Positions 14,701 through 23,700 are shown, numbered from the stretch's first letter. The stretch is DNA of 64,000 bases from Dimorphilus gyrociliatus (GCA_904063045.1 CAJFCJ010000033.1:1-64000); one strand, 5' to 3'. Notes: generated by a model from the sequence alone, not told the origin. Made by a program: numbers and translations.

Positions 14701-17700
14701 AATTTTTTATTACACAGTATATAACTATCATATTTCAAAAAAAGGTATTCTAAGCCGAATGATTATGTATTATTCCTAATCTATTTAACTTAATAATTAG
14801 AACAGTAACATACATATATATGTAGTATAAAGTACATAGTACCGTTTATAAAAAAAGTATATATGATTTTCGCCGCTATAATTCTAAAACCTGAAATTTC
14901 TTTGTGTAATATTCTAACAAACAGCCAAAAAACCTTTTGAATGTAAGATATGAAAAAAGATATTTACTTTAAAACAAATGTATTCTCACTTATGACTTTT
15001 TATCAACATTTAAAAGGCAGATATGGTTTTTCACCTTTTATCGAAGTGACAGTTCATATATTTTTGACTATTTTAAAAAACACATAAAAATTGTAAGATG
15101 TTTACTGACTATTTTCTATCAAAAATTCAATATGAAGAGATATTTCAAAAATTGTTTGCTTGTTTTTTTTCAAATTTAATATTGCAAACATTTGTATAGG
15201 CTGATTTGAAGATTCATTTAAGAAACAGGTGAAAAACCATTCCAATGTAAAGTATGTGGTGAACGATTTAATCAAAAGGGTAGTCTGAATAGTCATGAAC
15301 GTATTCATACTGGTAAGTTTGCCATATTAATACATGAATTTGATGGTTTTTTGCCTGTTTGTTATAAATTCTGATTCTTTGTAACTCAGTTAAAGTAGTT
15401 TATATAAATGCTTAATTTCACTAAAACGAACGGGCGAAAAACCATTCGAATGTAAGACGTGCGGAGAGAGATTCACTGTTTCGTCTAATTTAAAGACTCA
15501 CGAACGTGTTCACACTGGTGAGGTTTTATTTAAATTTTGAAAATTCGTAAGGTCTTTCGCTTGTTTCCTTCGTTAGAAGATTCAACCTATTTTTTATAAT
15601 TTGTATAATAAACAGGCGAAAAACCTTTTGAATGTAAGGTGTGCAGTGAAAGATTTACTCGAAAACACCACCTTACTAGTCACGAACGTATTCATACTGG
15701 TGAGTTTTAACGACATTTAAAAAGTAGATATGGTTTTTCACCTTTTTTGAAATGAAAGTTCAAATATTTTTAACAATTTTAAAAATAATCTAAAAGTTGT
15801 AGGATGTTTAATGACTATTTTCTATCCAAATTTCAACATGAAGAGATTTCAAAAATTGTTTGCTTGTCTTTTTTCGAATTTTATAATGCGGACCTTTCTA
15901 TAAACTGAATTGAAAATTCATTTAACAAACAGGTGAAAAACCATTCGAATGTAAAGTATGTGGTGAACGATTTAGTCAAAAAAGCCATCTCAATGTTCAT
16001 GAACGTATTCACACTGGTAAGTTTGCCATATTTATACACGAATTTGATGGTTTTTTACCTTTTTGTTTAGTAAATAATTACCTTCTAGTACTTTATAATT
16101 CTTTTAAAATACCTAATTTCATTGAAACAAACAGGTGAAAAACCATTCCAATGTAAAGTATGTGGTGAACGATTTAATCAAAAAGGCAGTCTGAATATTC
16201 ATGAGCGCATTCATACTGGTAAGTTTGCCGTATTAAAACATGAATTTTGATGGTTTTTTGCCTGTTTGTTTAGTAAATAATCACCTTCTAGTACTTTGTA
16301 ATTCTTTTAAAATACCTAATTTCATTGAAACAAACAGGCGAAAAGCCTTACGAATGTAAGACGTGTGGAGAGAGATTCACTGTATCATCTAGTTTAAAGA
16401 CTCACGAACGTATTCATACTGGTGAGTTTTTTTCGACATTTAAAGCGCAGATATGGTTTTTCATCTCTTTTTTTCTGAAAGTTCAAACCGATTTCTACAA
16501 TTTTAATCGTTCTAAGGAAAAGCGTTCTAAATACAGAATGTATGATTACTATAGAGACATTTTAAAATATTTTTTTCCCATATTTCTCGGATGTAATGTT
16601 AAAGATATCTCTAAAAACCGATTTGAAGAATCATTTAATAAACAGGTGAAAAACCATTCAAATGTAAAATATGTGGTGAACGATTTAGTCAAAAAAGCCA
16701 TCTCAACGCTCATGAACGTATTCACACTGGTAAGTTTGCCATATTTATATAAAGAAATATTTGATAAAACGTACAGTCAGAAAGCGTTTTGATTGCAGTG
16801 TAAGAGAGATTCACTAGTTTAAGACGATGTAAAATCTGGTTTTTCAATGGAAGTAGAGAAACAATTTCCATCTGATGATAGGCATAAAAAGTTATGATTA
16901 TTAAGGGTATTGTGAAAGGTTTTATAAAGTGTATACCTCAACTACCACAAACACATTTACAGTAATAGGTTCTGCATAGGTGTTTCCTGGAGTATTTAAT
17001 TAAAAATTTTTTTTTAGAGCGCAAAATCGTAGAAATGTACTTTTTTAAGGACAGATTTCACGTTAACCAGTGACTGAATTTTTTATCAGGATATTCACAG
17101 TAGACAGATTAGTTTTCACTTACAGTTACTTTCTTAAGATCTAAAAGTTAATGTTTTCCCTTTTACTGTTATATGTTAATATATTAAAGGATAATGTTCA
17201 GTTATAAATGTAATTTCGATATTTTTACTCTTTATTGTCTAAAAGATATTTTCAATTTTTTAGGCGAAAAGCCTTACGCATGTGATTTCTGTGATTCAAG
17301 ATTTATCGACTCTAGTTCTCTTAGAAAGCATATTAGAATTCATACTGATTAGATTTTTTTTTCTTTTAAAATAACTTTGTGTGTGCTAATTATTTTCATA
17401 TTGTCTACTAATTTCGAATCAGCGAAGGATGCTAATTACTTAATATTTATTTTTGGCAAAAATATTTAATTAGGTTTTTTTAGAAATTATTTTTTATCTG
17501 TAGTCATAGATTTCACAAAAAGTATAAGAAAATTCACACTGGTTACACTTAATTTTAAAACTAGAATGTACTCTTATGGGCTTTGGTTGTCAAAGTTATT
17601 ATGATTTCGTGTGTGGTCATTTGTTGTATGAATGATAGCTTATCTGTCATCTGGGCGAAAGTTTACCTAATGTAATTCTTTTAATTAAAAAACCCAACTG

Positions 17701-20700: not shown

Positions 20701-23700
20701 TTAAAAAGTAGATATGGTTTTTCACCTTTTTTGAAATGAAAGTTCAAATATTTTTAACAATTTTAAAAATAATCTAAAAGTTGTAGGATGTTTAATGACT
20801 ATTTTCTATCCAAATTTCAACATGAAGAGATTTCAAAAATTGTTTGCTTGTCTTTTTTCGAATTTTATAATGCGGACCTTTCTATAAACTGAATTGAAAA
20901 TTCATTTAACAAACAGGTGAAAAACCATTCGAATGTAAAGTATGTGGTGAACGATTTAGTCAAAAAGGCAGTCTGAATAGTCATGAACGAATTCATACTG
21001 GTAAGTTTGCCAAATATATATAAGTAAATTTGATGGTTTTTTACCTTTTTGTTTAGTAAATAATTACTTTCTAGTCCTTTGTAATTTATACAAGATACTT
21101 AATTTCATTGAAACAAACAGGTGAAAAACCATTCCAATGTAAAGTATGTGGTGAACGATTTAATCAAAAAGGCATTCTGAATAATCATGAACGAATTCAT
21201 ACTGGTAAGTTTGCCATATTAATACATGAATTTGATGGTTTTTTGCCTGTTTGTTTAGTAAATAATTAAATTCTAGTACTTTGTAATTCTTTTAAAATAC
21301 CTTATTTCATTGAAACAAACAGGTGAAAAACCATTCCAATGTAAAGTATGTGGTGAACGATTTAATCGAAAAGACAATCTCAATATTCATGAACGCATTC
21401 ATACTGGTAAGTTTGCCATATTAATACATGAATTTGAGGGTTTTTTGCCTGTTTGTTTAGTAAATAATCACCTTCTAGTACTTTGTAATTCTTTTAAAAT
21501 ACCTAATTTCATTGAAACAAACAGGTGAAAAACCTTACGAATGTAAGACGTGTGGAGAGAGATTCACTGTATCATCTAGTTTAAAGACTCACGAACGTAT
21601 TCATACTGGTGAGTTTTTTTCGACATTTAAAGCGCAGATATAATTTTTTATCTCTTTTATTCTAAAAGTTCGAACCGATTTCTACAATTTTAGTATCGTG
21701 CCAACGAAAAACGTTCTAAATACAGAATGTGTGATTACTTTAGAGATATTTTAAAATATTTTTTTCCCATTTTTCTCGGATGTAATGTTAAAGATATCTC
21801 TAAAAACCGATTTTAAAATTAATTTAACAAACAGGTGAAAAACCATTCGAATGTAAAATATGTGGTGAACGATTTAATCAAAAAGGCAATCTGAATTGTC
21901 ATGAACGTATTCACTCTGGTAAGTTTGCCAAATATTTATAAGTAAATTTGATGGTTTTTTGCCTGTTTGTTTAGTAAATAATTACCTTCTAGTCCTTTGT
22001 TATTTATACAAGATACTTAATTTAATTGAAACAAATAGGCGTAAAACCTTTTGAATGTAAGGTGTGCGATGAAAGATTTTCCCATAAATCCTAACTTATC
22101 TCATTCATGAACGACGTGTTCTTCCGTCTGAAACGCCTTTTGACATATTTCAAGAAACCATTTGAATGTTATTTGACCAAAACAAAAATAGAACAGTCTC
22201 GTGAATTTTTCACGCAAATGATTTGTGTACAGACTGTAATACTTTGTGTAACATTACTAATTGGATAAAGAGGCAACACATATTGAATAATGAAGTTAAG
22301 CTATTATTCTGACTTTGGTTAAATAATTTTCATTTTCGGTAAACGAAAAAAAAGAGAAAAGAAATTTTAAGAAATGTTTATATTGTATTGCGTATTCTGA
22401 TACTTTTATAGGATGTTCTATTTATTCACTAAAATTTTTTTTATAATTCACTTATGTTGAAAAGGAGAACAACCGTTTGAGTGTAGAATTTGCGGTGAAA
22501 GGTTTAAGCAACTCTCGGGCTTAAAATATCATATTAACAGTATCCACCCTGGTGAGTTTAATTTAAGAAATACTTTTTTCGGTTGAATACCGATTTTAAA
22601 GTTTAACATTATATTTGGGTCTGTTTTTAATAATTTGTTTTAGCTCTTTATAATTTAAGTAGTATGCTTTTTCTTTTTGATTACGAGTTTTTAGGCAATA
22701 ACGTTTTAGGCTTTAATAGGCTTTGGTAAATGGTACAGGAAGATACATTTAAAAACTATATTATTTGTTCTTCGAACCCTATGTTTTGTAATTTTAACTG
22801 TTTTATGTTGCATACCCCTTTTGGTTAGCAAAGATTATTAAGGTTTTGGGGGGGTGGGTTTTGAGAGAGAAATAATTGTTTCCTAATTTAATAGAGACGT
22901 TGACAAAAAAATTTTATCATGTATATTATATTATATATTTTTTATTGTTGAAAGTTTTTCTTTTTTCTGTCGGTTTGGATACTAACCTAATAGGGTTTTT
23001 GAATGTTTTTTATTTACAGTCAAAAGTCCTTTTTCTTGTGAACGTTGCCCAGCTGTTTTTCAAAATGATGCGGATTTGAAAAAACATGTTAAAATTCATT
23101 TTGGTAAGAATCTAAATATTTTCCGTAAGGAAAAAAAAGCGAACGATTTCCTTCTCTGCTCCTTGCTAGCTCCTTTGTCCACCCTATATGTCATACCCTC
23201 TCAATTTAAGTTAACTCTACAATTAATTACTTGGAAGCGTAAAAGTAACATTAATAGTGTTACGTTGTGTTCCTGTAAATTTATATATACATATACATAC
23301 ACATATACATATATATATATATATATATGTATGTATGTATATATGTATGCATATTTTTATGTATATATGTATGTATGTATGTGTGCATGTGTGCATGTTT
23401 GTGTGTATGCATGCGTGCATGTGCTTTTTTTGTAAGTGAGAACCTTTACTTTCATTTTGAATGATTGTTGAGGCTCTTTTTTTTGGAGGCTTTCACGATG
23501 GCAGACATATTCACGATTAACTGTTAATTCATTGTTAATTGAAAAGATATAATGACGAGATGGACCAAAAAAATATGTCTAAAACAACAGGTGACAAGCC
23601 ATATGTTTGCAAAGTTTGTGGTGAAAGGTTTCCTCAGAGTTCAATGTTAAAGACTCACGAACGACTTCATCTGGGTAAGTGTAATATGTTGAACATACTG

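Follow-up and report, generated by a model that had tools for sequence, protein, structure and literature searches.

Antisense elements in the introns of a zinc-finger exon array of Dimorphilus gyrociliatus, predicted to pair with the next 3' splice site

RNA structures that bridge an intron include the stems formed between the 5' splice site and the branchpoint in yeast. In teleost introns with (AC)m-(GT)n tracts, bridging structures replace U2AF2 where pyrimidine tracts are obscured (Lin et al. 2016, PMC4691745). Competing pairings between docking sites and selectors are known from mutually exclusive exon clusters, such as Dscam1 exon 6, 14-3-3 zeta, and ATE1 (PMC7797038, PMC12962786), and a duplicated stem-loop model has been put forward to explain how competing RNA structures arise (Ivanov and Pervouchine 2018, PMC6071210). 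Here, we describe an array of C2H2 zinc-finger exons in a 64-kb stretch of Dimorphilus gyrociliatus DNA (GCA_904063045.1, CAJFCJ010000033.1:1-64000, hereafter the window), in which 15 short intronic elements are each antisense to the next acceptor and lie 30-32 nt downstream of the donor. This feature of the array is real and non-random, and its sequence plausibly reflects a previously undescribed form of RNA-structure-directed splice-site control. No zinc-finger exon array with such elements was found in the open-access literature, and an Rfam scan gave no match within the array.

The window is AT-rich (~30% G+C) and encodes 31 C2H2 fingers on the + strand between 5.7 and 26.1 kb. Within the array, every exon is 84 nt long and encodes one finger. 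As the introns interrupt the linker H-T-G|E-K-P within its Gly codon, the finger exons are all phase 1 and symmetric. Repeat block A (15229..16729, + strand) comprises seven such exons, starting at 15229, 15434, 15616, 15933, 16135, 16338, and 16646, and the paralogous block B (20212..21918, + strand) comprises eight 84-nt single-finger exons, starting at 20212, 20417, 20600, 20917, 21121, 21323, 21525, and 21835. Both blocks contain runs with a tandem period of 202 nt, which corresponds to one exon and a 118-nt intron. Type I introns (Ia and Ib, ~118-121 nt) lie downstream of exons of the CKVCGERF(N/S)(Q/R)K type, type II introns are 98-99 nt long, and type III introns (IIIa and IIIb) measure 224-233 nt; the order in block A is Ia, II, IIIa, Ib, Ib, and IIIb.

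The antisense core GGTTTTT[CT][AG]CC is found on the + strand at 15025, 15345, 15732, 16049, 16252, and 16455, and again at 20328, 20716, 21035, 21237, 21439, and 21953, while the type II elements are located at 15549 and 20532 and a decayed copy at 21640. The partner of each element is the next acceptor, that is, the AG together with 12-18 coding nt, and the offsets from donor to element are 30, 31, 30, 30, 31, 31, 30, 31, 30, 32, 30, 30, 31, and 32 nt. A first-pass annotation, made from the sequence alone, had quoted such elements, and its coordinates, sequences, and donor spacings were all confirmed in the window. A sliding duplex scan across both strands of the entire window identified 13 of the 15 elements as exactly the + strand sites at or below -20 kcal/mol, the best + strand site outside the array reaching -19.1 kcal/mol. 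Since all + strand sites at or below this threshold are these elements, their placement is not due to chance. The same scan revealed no element copies outside the array in the 64 kb and no additional acceptor-complementary site in the locus that could act as a shared docking site. The introns of the non-repeated fingers were found to be element-free, in line with the annotation, which had seen no elements there, and their cognate duplexes (-4 to -10 kcal/mol) are at background level. Its description of the 21640 copy as decayed was equally accurate, as 3 of 14 positions are changed and pairing is lost (-7 kcal/mol).

Like bridged introns, those of the array combine one tract close to the 5' splice site with a complementary one at their 3' end, signals at the 3' end (pyrimidine tract, branch region) are obscured or missing, the pyrimidine tract being weak or absent at the repeated acceptors, and the proposed role is to enforce the correct splice-site partners. 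In contrast to the teleost introns, the arms consist of unique sequence rather than dinucleotide repeats. Furthermore, unlike in bridged introns, the 3' arm of the array includes the AG and the adjoining coding sequence, the arms recur in every tandem unit so that cross-pairing is possible, and a dependence of splicing on the structure would be a prediction. With docking/selector systems it shares a variable exon choice and, in silico, the competition of many near-identical arms for one partner. It differs from them in that every intron has its own arm instead of a single docking site, in that one arm is the acceptor itself and not an intronic selector, and in that exons are combined and skipped (16218>16338 alongside multi-exon skips) rather than mutually exclusive. 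The initially proposed analogy to Dscam docking/selector pairing fails on two defining features, a shared docking site and the inclusion of exactly one exon. The array agrees with the duplicated stem-loop model in that an exon and its adjacent intronic stem-loop appear to have been duplicated in tandem, giving interchangeable arms, and both arms are contained in the 202-nt tandem unit. Whereas one arm is duplicated in that model and the exons are mutually exclusive, the array duplicates both arms, which results in many-to-many pairing.

Pair counts were scripted for all intron types, and the covariation alignment was restricted to types I and II. In a 21-nt frame, intact elements form 16-19 Watson-Crick and 0-3 G·U pairs with the next acceptor, with 12-21 consecutive pairs, and the AG lies inside the helix in 14 of the 15 copies. 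For types I and II, 95% of the stem cells are paired, compared to 47-59% after a shift of the partner by 1-3 columns. Changes on both sides are seen at two of the 21 stem positions (U-A/A-U and G-C/A-U/G·U), and the covariation score is matched by 3 of 500 column shuffles, a null that related sequences can beat without any structure. The summed duplex energy is -329 kcal/mol for the next acceptor, -307 +/- 10 kcal/mol for permuted acceptors, and -294 kcal/mol for the element's own exon; the significance of next versus permuted (P = 0.017) is overstated, as block B duplicates block A and the effective sample of this comparison is only ~7. The preference for pairing across the intron over pairing across the exon is clear only for type III (-22.5 for the next versus -14.5 for the own exon), types I and II being almost without preference.

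Folding against shuffled controls, one of the checks recommended at the outset, supported the hairpins. For isolated type I and II introns, the minimum-energy fold is the element-acceptor hairpin (z = -2.2 to -5.0), with 0-6 of 200 shuffles equally stable. For type III, the minimum-energy fold likewise includes the stem, whereas the z-score of the whole intron is only -1.6. When all of block B is folded at equilibrium, no intact element is left without an acceptor partner. Compared to the non-repeated acceptors, the repeated ones have a lower predicted unpaired fraction (0.24 versus 0.39) and a lower pyrimidine fraction (0.44 versus 0.59, P = 0.004), both being comparisons of homologous, non-independent sites.

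Three indirect tests on the sequences suggest that the pairing between element and acceptor is probably maintained. First, the element is the sole island of similarity between type I and types II/III, with an identity of 0.78-0.83 compared to a null of ~0.53. The identity of the spacers (0.48-0.52) equals the shuffle mean (0.50-0.52), and similarity in the 30 nt downstream of the element is no higher than for shuffled sequence, which bears out the earlier observation that the three intron types are otherwise dissimilar. Among the remaining comparisons, types II and IIIb show a weak spacer similarity (0.63 versus a null of 0.47), and IIIa and IIIb introns align along their full length. Second, in this IIIa versus IIIb comparison, the deepest one that can be aligned, the element differs at 1 of 14 positions versus 42% for the remaining intron sequence (P = 0.005), and the relic copy at 15023, which belongs to a dead exon and donor, differs at 0 of 14 positions versus 17% elsewhere (P = 0.07). 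Third, over the distinct element-acceptor combinations, the non-Watson-Crick transition-type stem cells comprise 18 G·U on the + (transcribed) strand as opposed to 3 A·C; a hand count of events gives ~10:1, or 11-12:3 with the decayed copy. As a DNA-level process predicts symmetry between G·U and A·C, this excess of G·U represents a strand-specific signature. In addition, the spacing of 30-32 nt amid randomised spacers and loops of ~40-180 nt suggests a constraint tied to the donor.

Transcripts of the locus were studied in assembled contigs of four public runs (X1-X4), which indicate the presence of joins and do not allow isoforms to be quantified. Contigs of X1, X3, and X4 consist of exons only, are joined at GT..AG, and thus behave as RNA, while X2 behaves as DNA; X3 and X4 carry the label 'DNA?' yet act as transcriptomes. 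Exon skipping, which had been postulated for the array, is evident from non-consecutive joins in the RNA-like contigs. The neighbour join 16218>16338 is found together with the long skips 18653>20917 and 18653>23020, which bypass up to all of block B, and with the joins 13240>20417, 13240>20600, 13240>20917, 12977>18570, and 16218>20417. Exon 20417 is joined to both GCG- and GTG-type exons, and exon 20600 is thus optional. This mixture of neighbour and long-range joins shows that the locus is one complex splicing unit with combinatorial exon use, and the apparent block A and block B 'genes' behave as alternative zinc-finger modules of one unit (12894-23103), similar to lola. The depth of IIIb introns in X1 is ~4% of that of the neighbouring exons for the decayed and ~2% for the intact copy, contig depths being rough, and neither intron has any depth in the X3 and X4 contigs.

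Taken together, we favour by a modest degree the reading that a stem-loop was duplicated along with the exon unit and has been kept at the RNA level to bridge or mask acceptors that lack a pyrimidine tract. The elements would constitute the 5' arms of pre-mRNA hairpins across each intron of the repeated finger block, and the 3' arm would be the next 3' splice site, in which ~9 intron nt and the AG are followed by the initial 12-18 coding nt of the G-E-K-P linker. Tandem duplication, currently with a period of 202 nt, may have multiplied one ancestral exon together with a stem-loop across its intron, and the copying of both arms in each duplication would have created many near-interchangeable arms. 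Their pairing might since then have been held by RNA-level selection, the helix being retained because it governs acceptors devoid of a pyrimidine tract. The hairpin would place the donor ~30 nt from the base of the helix that holds the next acceptor, and the helix could substitute for the absent pyrimidine tract by tying donor i to acceptor i+1. Mispairing with near-identical acceptors, or a failure to pair, could then lead to the observed exon skipping. Helix formation in vivo, selection on the helices, and the direction of their effect on splicing are what we infer here. Within the RNA-level reading we lean slightly towards bridging, or 'addressing', over a purely inhibitory mask, which is nearly as likely, because of the donor spacing, the missing pyrimidine tract, the trend towards the next over the own exon, and the precedent of bridged introns (PMC4691745). 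A stricter version, a self-addressed splice code in which an antisense 'address' 30 nt past the donor picks the acceptor and hence the next finger exon, is unlikely; if true, one locus could generate combinatorial zinc-finger DNA-binding arrays via RNA pairing alone.

Several observations weigh against an RNA-level role. A helix covering the AG would normally be expected to inhibit splicing, and the pyrimidine tract is also missing at some non-repeated, element-free acceptors. The 16730 intron has no element at +30, and only weak type III homology and no intact element is found upstream of exon 20212. Type I elements (…TTTTTTGCC…), being at a G·U intermediate, pair with GTG-type acceptors about as well as with GCG-type ones, be they own, next, or distant. 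The type II element, which is ~25 nt long and extends 18 nt into an exon, fits best to the CCTTACGAAT-type (CCTTAC-type) acceptors of exons 16338 and 21525 (-33/-30), ahead of its actual neighbour (-26) and its own exon (-25). Folded at equilibrium, block B shows a choice of the neighbour for four of its seven intact elements and of a non-neighbour for three of all eight elements, which implies that the arms can compete in silico. The decayed element at 21640 has diverged faster than its surroundings (3 of 14 positions changed versus 8% in the flanks), and the 30-nt spacer of type I introns is as strongly conserved as the element itself, with homology ending abruptly past the element, which points to concerted evolution. 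The joins in the contigs cannot be linked to the hairpins. Finally, the evidence comes from one genome, in which all copies are paralogues of one unit and blocks A and B are recent duplicates, leaving few independent events; a metagenome pattern scan for related loci returned two bacterial contigs with chance matches only.

These points limit what can be retained of the first-pass annotation. Its statement that the elements match the next exon and not their own applies to type III and fails for type II, as the latter fits a non-neighbour best. Covariation between element and acceptor is backed by the two positions that change on both sides and by the preference over permuted acceptors, yet it is thin, given the promiscuity of type I and the misfit of type II with its neighbour. 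A selected RNA pairing over the AG is plausible, judging from the conserved island, the G·U excess, the stable folds, and the narrow spacing, set against the thin covariation and the descent of all copies from one unit.

The main alternative, which is less likely, is that the elements are DNA-level inverted repeats without any role in RNA. A template switch may have copied the complement of the acceptor into the intron, once or repeatedly, after which tandem duplication and concerted evolution of an exon-plus-51-nt module would have spread and homogenised the repeat, and occasional arm-to-arm template switching could have renewed complementarity and imitated covariation. Template switching has been documented both as a source of hairpins and as a process that maintains them (PMC8794818), and the array resembles its quasi-palindromic products in being a short, sharp-bordered repeat with arms within 40-180 nt and apparent compensatory changes. 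Consistent with such an origin, the inverted homology does not extend significantly into the spacer, the 5' modules of type I introns share 51 identical nt, with Ia/Ib homology ending right past the element, and the elements are decayed in one copy, absent in another, and nowhere intact upstream of exon 20212. The match of the type II element to another acceptor type than that of its present neighbour likewise suggests copy history and not tuning. However, template switching alone does not explain the strand-specific excess of G·U over A·C on the transcribed strand or the donor distance fixed at 30-32 nt despite randomised spacers and variable loops, nor why the element outconserves the adjacent intron sequence in the deepest alignable comparison. 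If the hairpins are functionless, the array would still be a clean example of a short inverted repeat that was spread and homogenised by tandem duplication.

It is doubtful that the hairpin acts purely as a mask that hides the AG, leaving unpaired acceptors to be used in a stochastic, Dscam-like choice, which was the main idea of the first-pass annotation. Such a mask falls within the RNA-level reading, and its probability is contained in that of the latter, not additional to it. The position of the AG within nearly all helices, the low predicted accessibility of the repeated acceptors, and the interchangeable arms would suit a mask, as would the long-range skipping, in which element-free upstream donors enter the array at several acceptors, and the relic element at 15023, which is intact despite its dead donor. 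A mask, however, could sit anywhere in the intron, and yet the donor spacing is held constant. Moreover, a common docking site is missing, exons are not used in a mutually exclusive manner, and the masked acceptors of exons 20417 and 20600 are still used by distant donors.

The remaining explanations are far weaker. The elements are very unlikely to be editing-site complementary sequences that recruit ADAR to recode adenosines of the GEKP linker or to destroy the AG. The exon-intron duplex of 21-33 bp and its A-rich exonic arm would be suitable, but several G·U pairs and long loops make it a poor ADAR substrate, and no A>G differences are listed at these sites in the X1, X3, and X4 contigs, which is weak evidence as contigs drop rare variants. 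Although the stems are stable and at least 21 nt long, precursors of intronic hairpin small RNAs (mirtron or hpRNA-like) aimed at zinc-finger linker sequences are highly improbable, since the 5' arm begins at +30 and the 3' arm crosses the 3' splice site, so that the ends do not match the splice sites, the loops of 40-180 nt are not short, and the array has no Rfam matches. That the elements are remnants of transposon-derived introns (introners or terminal repeats of miniature inverted-repeat transposable elements) is hardly credible despite the association of an inverted repeat with an intron, as the 5' arm lies 30 nt inside the intron, the 3' arm reaches 12-18 nt into conserved coding sequence, copies outside the array are missing in the 64 kb, and the intron types are unrelated apart from the element.

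Should the hairpins have a role in splicing, copying an exon along with its stem-loop would yield many-to-many competing pairings and a combinatorial use of DNA-binding modules, and structure-directed splice-site choice would no longer be confined to mutually exclusive clusters and introns bridged by simple repeats. The array is unusually easy to test, as the introns are short and the changeable positions on the exon side are synonymous (GGT/GGC, CCA/CCT). The array also provides natural controls in the decayed element at 21640, the element-less intron at 16730, and the AG>GG acceptor at 15433.

All individual hairpins are located on the + strand. The most upstream one (hairpin 0, 15023..15240) links element 15023-15036, in a relic type IIIa intron with a dead upstream exon and donor, to acceptor arm 15219-15240 by 14 consecutive pairs. 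It is followed by hairpin Ia (15343..15445; element 15343-15363, arm 15425-15445), which has 21 pairs including 3 G·U and a GG acceptor, hairpin II (15543..15633; element 15543-15566, acceptor arm 15607-15633), and hairpin IIIa (15730..15944; element 15730-15747, arm 15927-15944) with 14 perfect pairs and 3 more. The Ib variant (16047..16146) pairs element 16047-16068 with acceptor arm 16125-16146, hairpin Ib (16250..16349) pairs 16250-16271 with 16328-16349, and hairpin IIIb (16453..16657) pairs 16453-16466 with 16637-16657. The element-less intron 16730..17263 comes next; it has a type I donor, contains a relic F2 exon and an element remnant at 16799-16850, and ends at an acceptor (17264) with a T-rich tract.

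In block B, hairpin Ia (20326..20428; element 20326-20346, arm 20408-20428) has 21 pairs, 2 of them G·U, and a z-score of -5.0. Hairpin II (20526..20617; element 20526-20549, acceptor arm 20591-20617; z = -3.4) and hairpin IIIa (20714..20928; element 20714-20731, arm 20911-20928), with its stem in the minimum-energy fold and a whole-intron z of -1.6, are followed by the Ib variant (21033..21132; element 21033-21054, acceptor arm 21111-21132; z = -4.2). Two Ib hairpins lie further downstream, at 21235..21334 (element 21235-21256, acceptor arm 21313-21334; z = -4.7) and at 21437..21536 (element 21437-21458, an AGGG variant, arm 21515-21536; z = -2.2). The decayed IIIb element (21640-21653, with GG>AA and C>T; feature 21640..21846, -7 kcal/mol) is located upstream of exon 21835. 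The last element (21951-21972, feature 21951..22050) lies upstream of a decayed terminal or pseudo-exon at 22039 and pairs back to the acceptor of its own exon in the whole-block fold.

Some further observations concern the decay and history of the array. The acceptor of exon 15434 in block A (15432-15433) is GG and that of its block B paralogue (20415-20416) is AG, and the block A exon is probably unusable; the hairpin upstream of it is still intact, the A>G change in the acceptor giving a T·G pair. Relic finger exons that are frameshifted, truncated, or interrupted by a stop are found at 14921-14992, 16799-16850, and 22039-22095. The element downstream of the first is still perfect, and the second retains a 9-nt element remnant, GGTTTTTCA, at 16838. 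The first 51 nt of types Ia and Ib, that is, donor, spacer, and element, are identical (15313-15365 versus 21205-21257), and the sequence downstream is unalignable, suggesting a recombination or conversion breakpoint at the 3' edge of the element. A longer ancestral inverted duplication that ran through the spacer to the donor was considered and rejected, as local and collinear alignments were no better than shuffles.

At GTG-type exon starts (e.g. 20917 and 21121), splicing restores a weak 5' splice-site-like sequence (...ACTG|GTGAAA), as at recursive sites, and this could contribute to the skipping of these exons. A 1532-nt X1 contig with the structure 16729>16799-17209>17264-18290>18570 continues past the stop of the 'terminal' exon (17348-17350) and is spliced on to the next module. 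The segment 18229-18290, which is spliced to 18570, is a possible first coding exon with an ATG at 18229 and an end (...HELKSYTG) that resembles a finger tail.

Outside the array, an AT-rich palindromic stretch at 23283-23423 gave several matches to miRNA families far under the gathering scores, which are probably low-complexity noise. On the minus strand, long open frames rich in Sushi (CCP) repeats, with a C-type lectin domain, extend over 27575-43160; the corresponding gene or genes are neighbours of the zinc-finger locus and unrelated to the hairpins.

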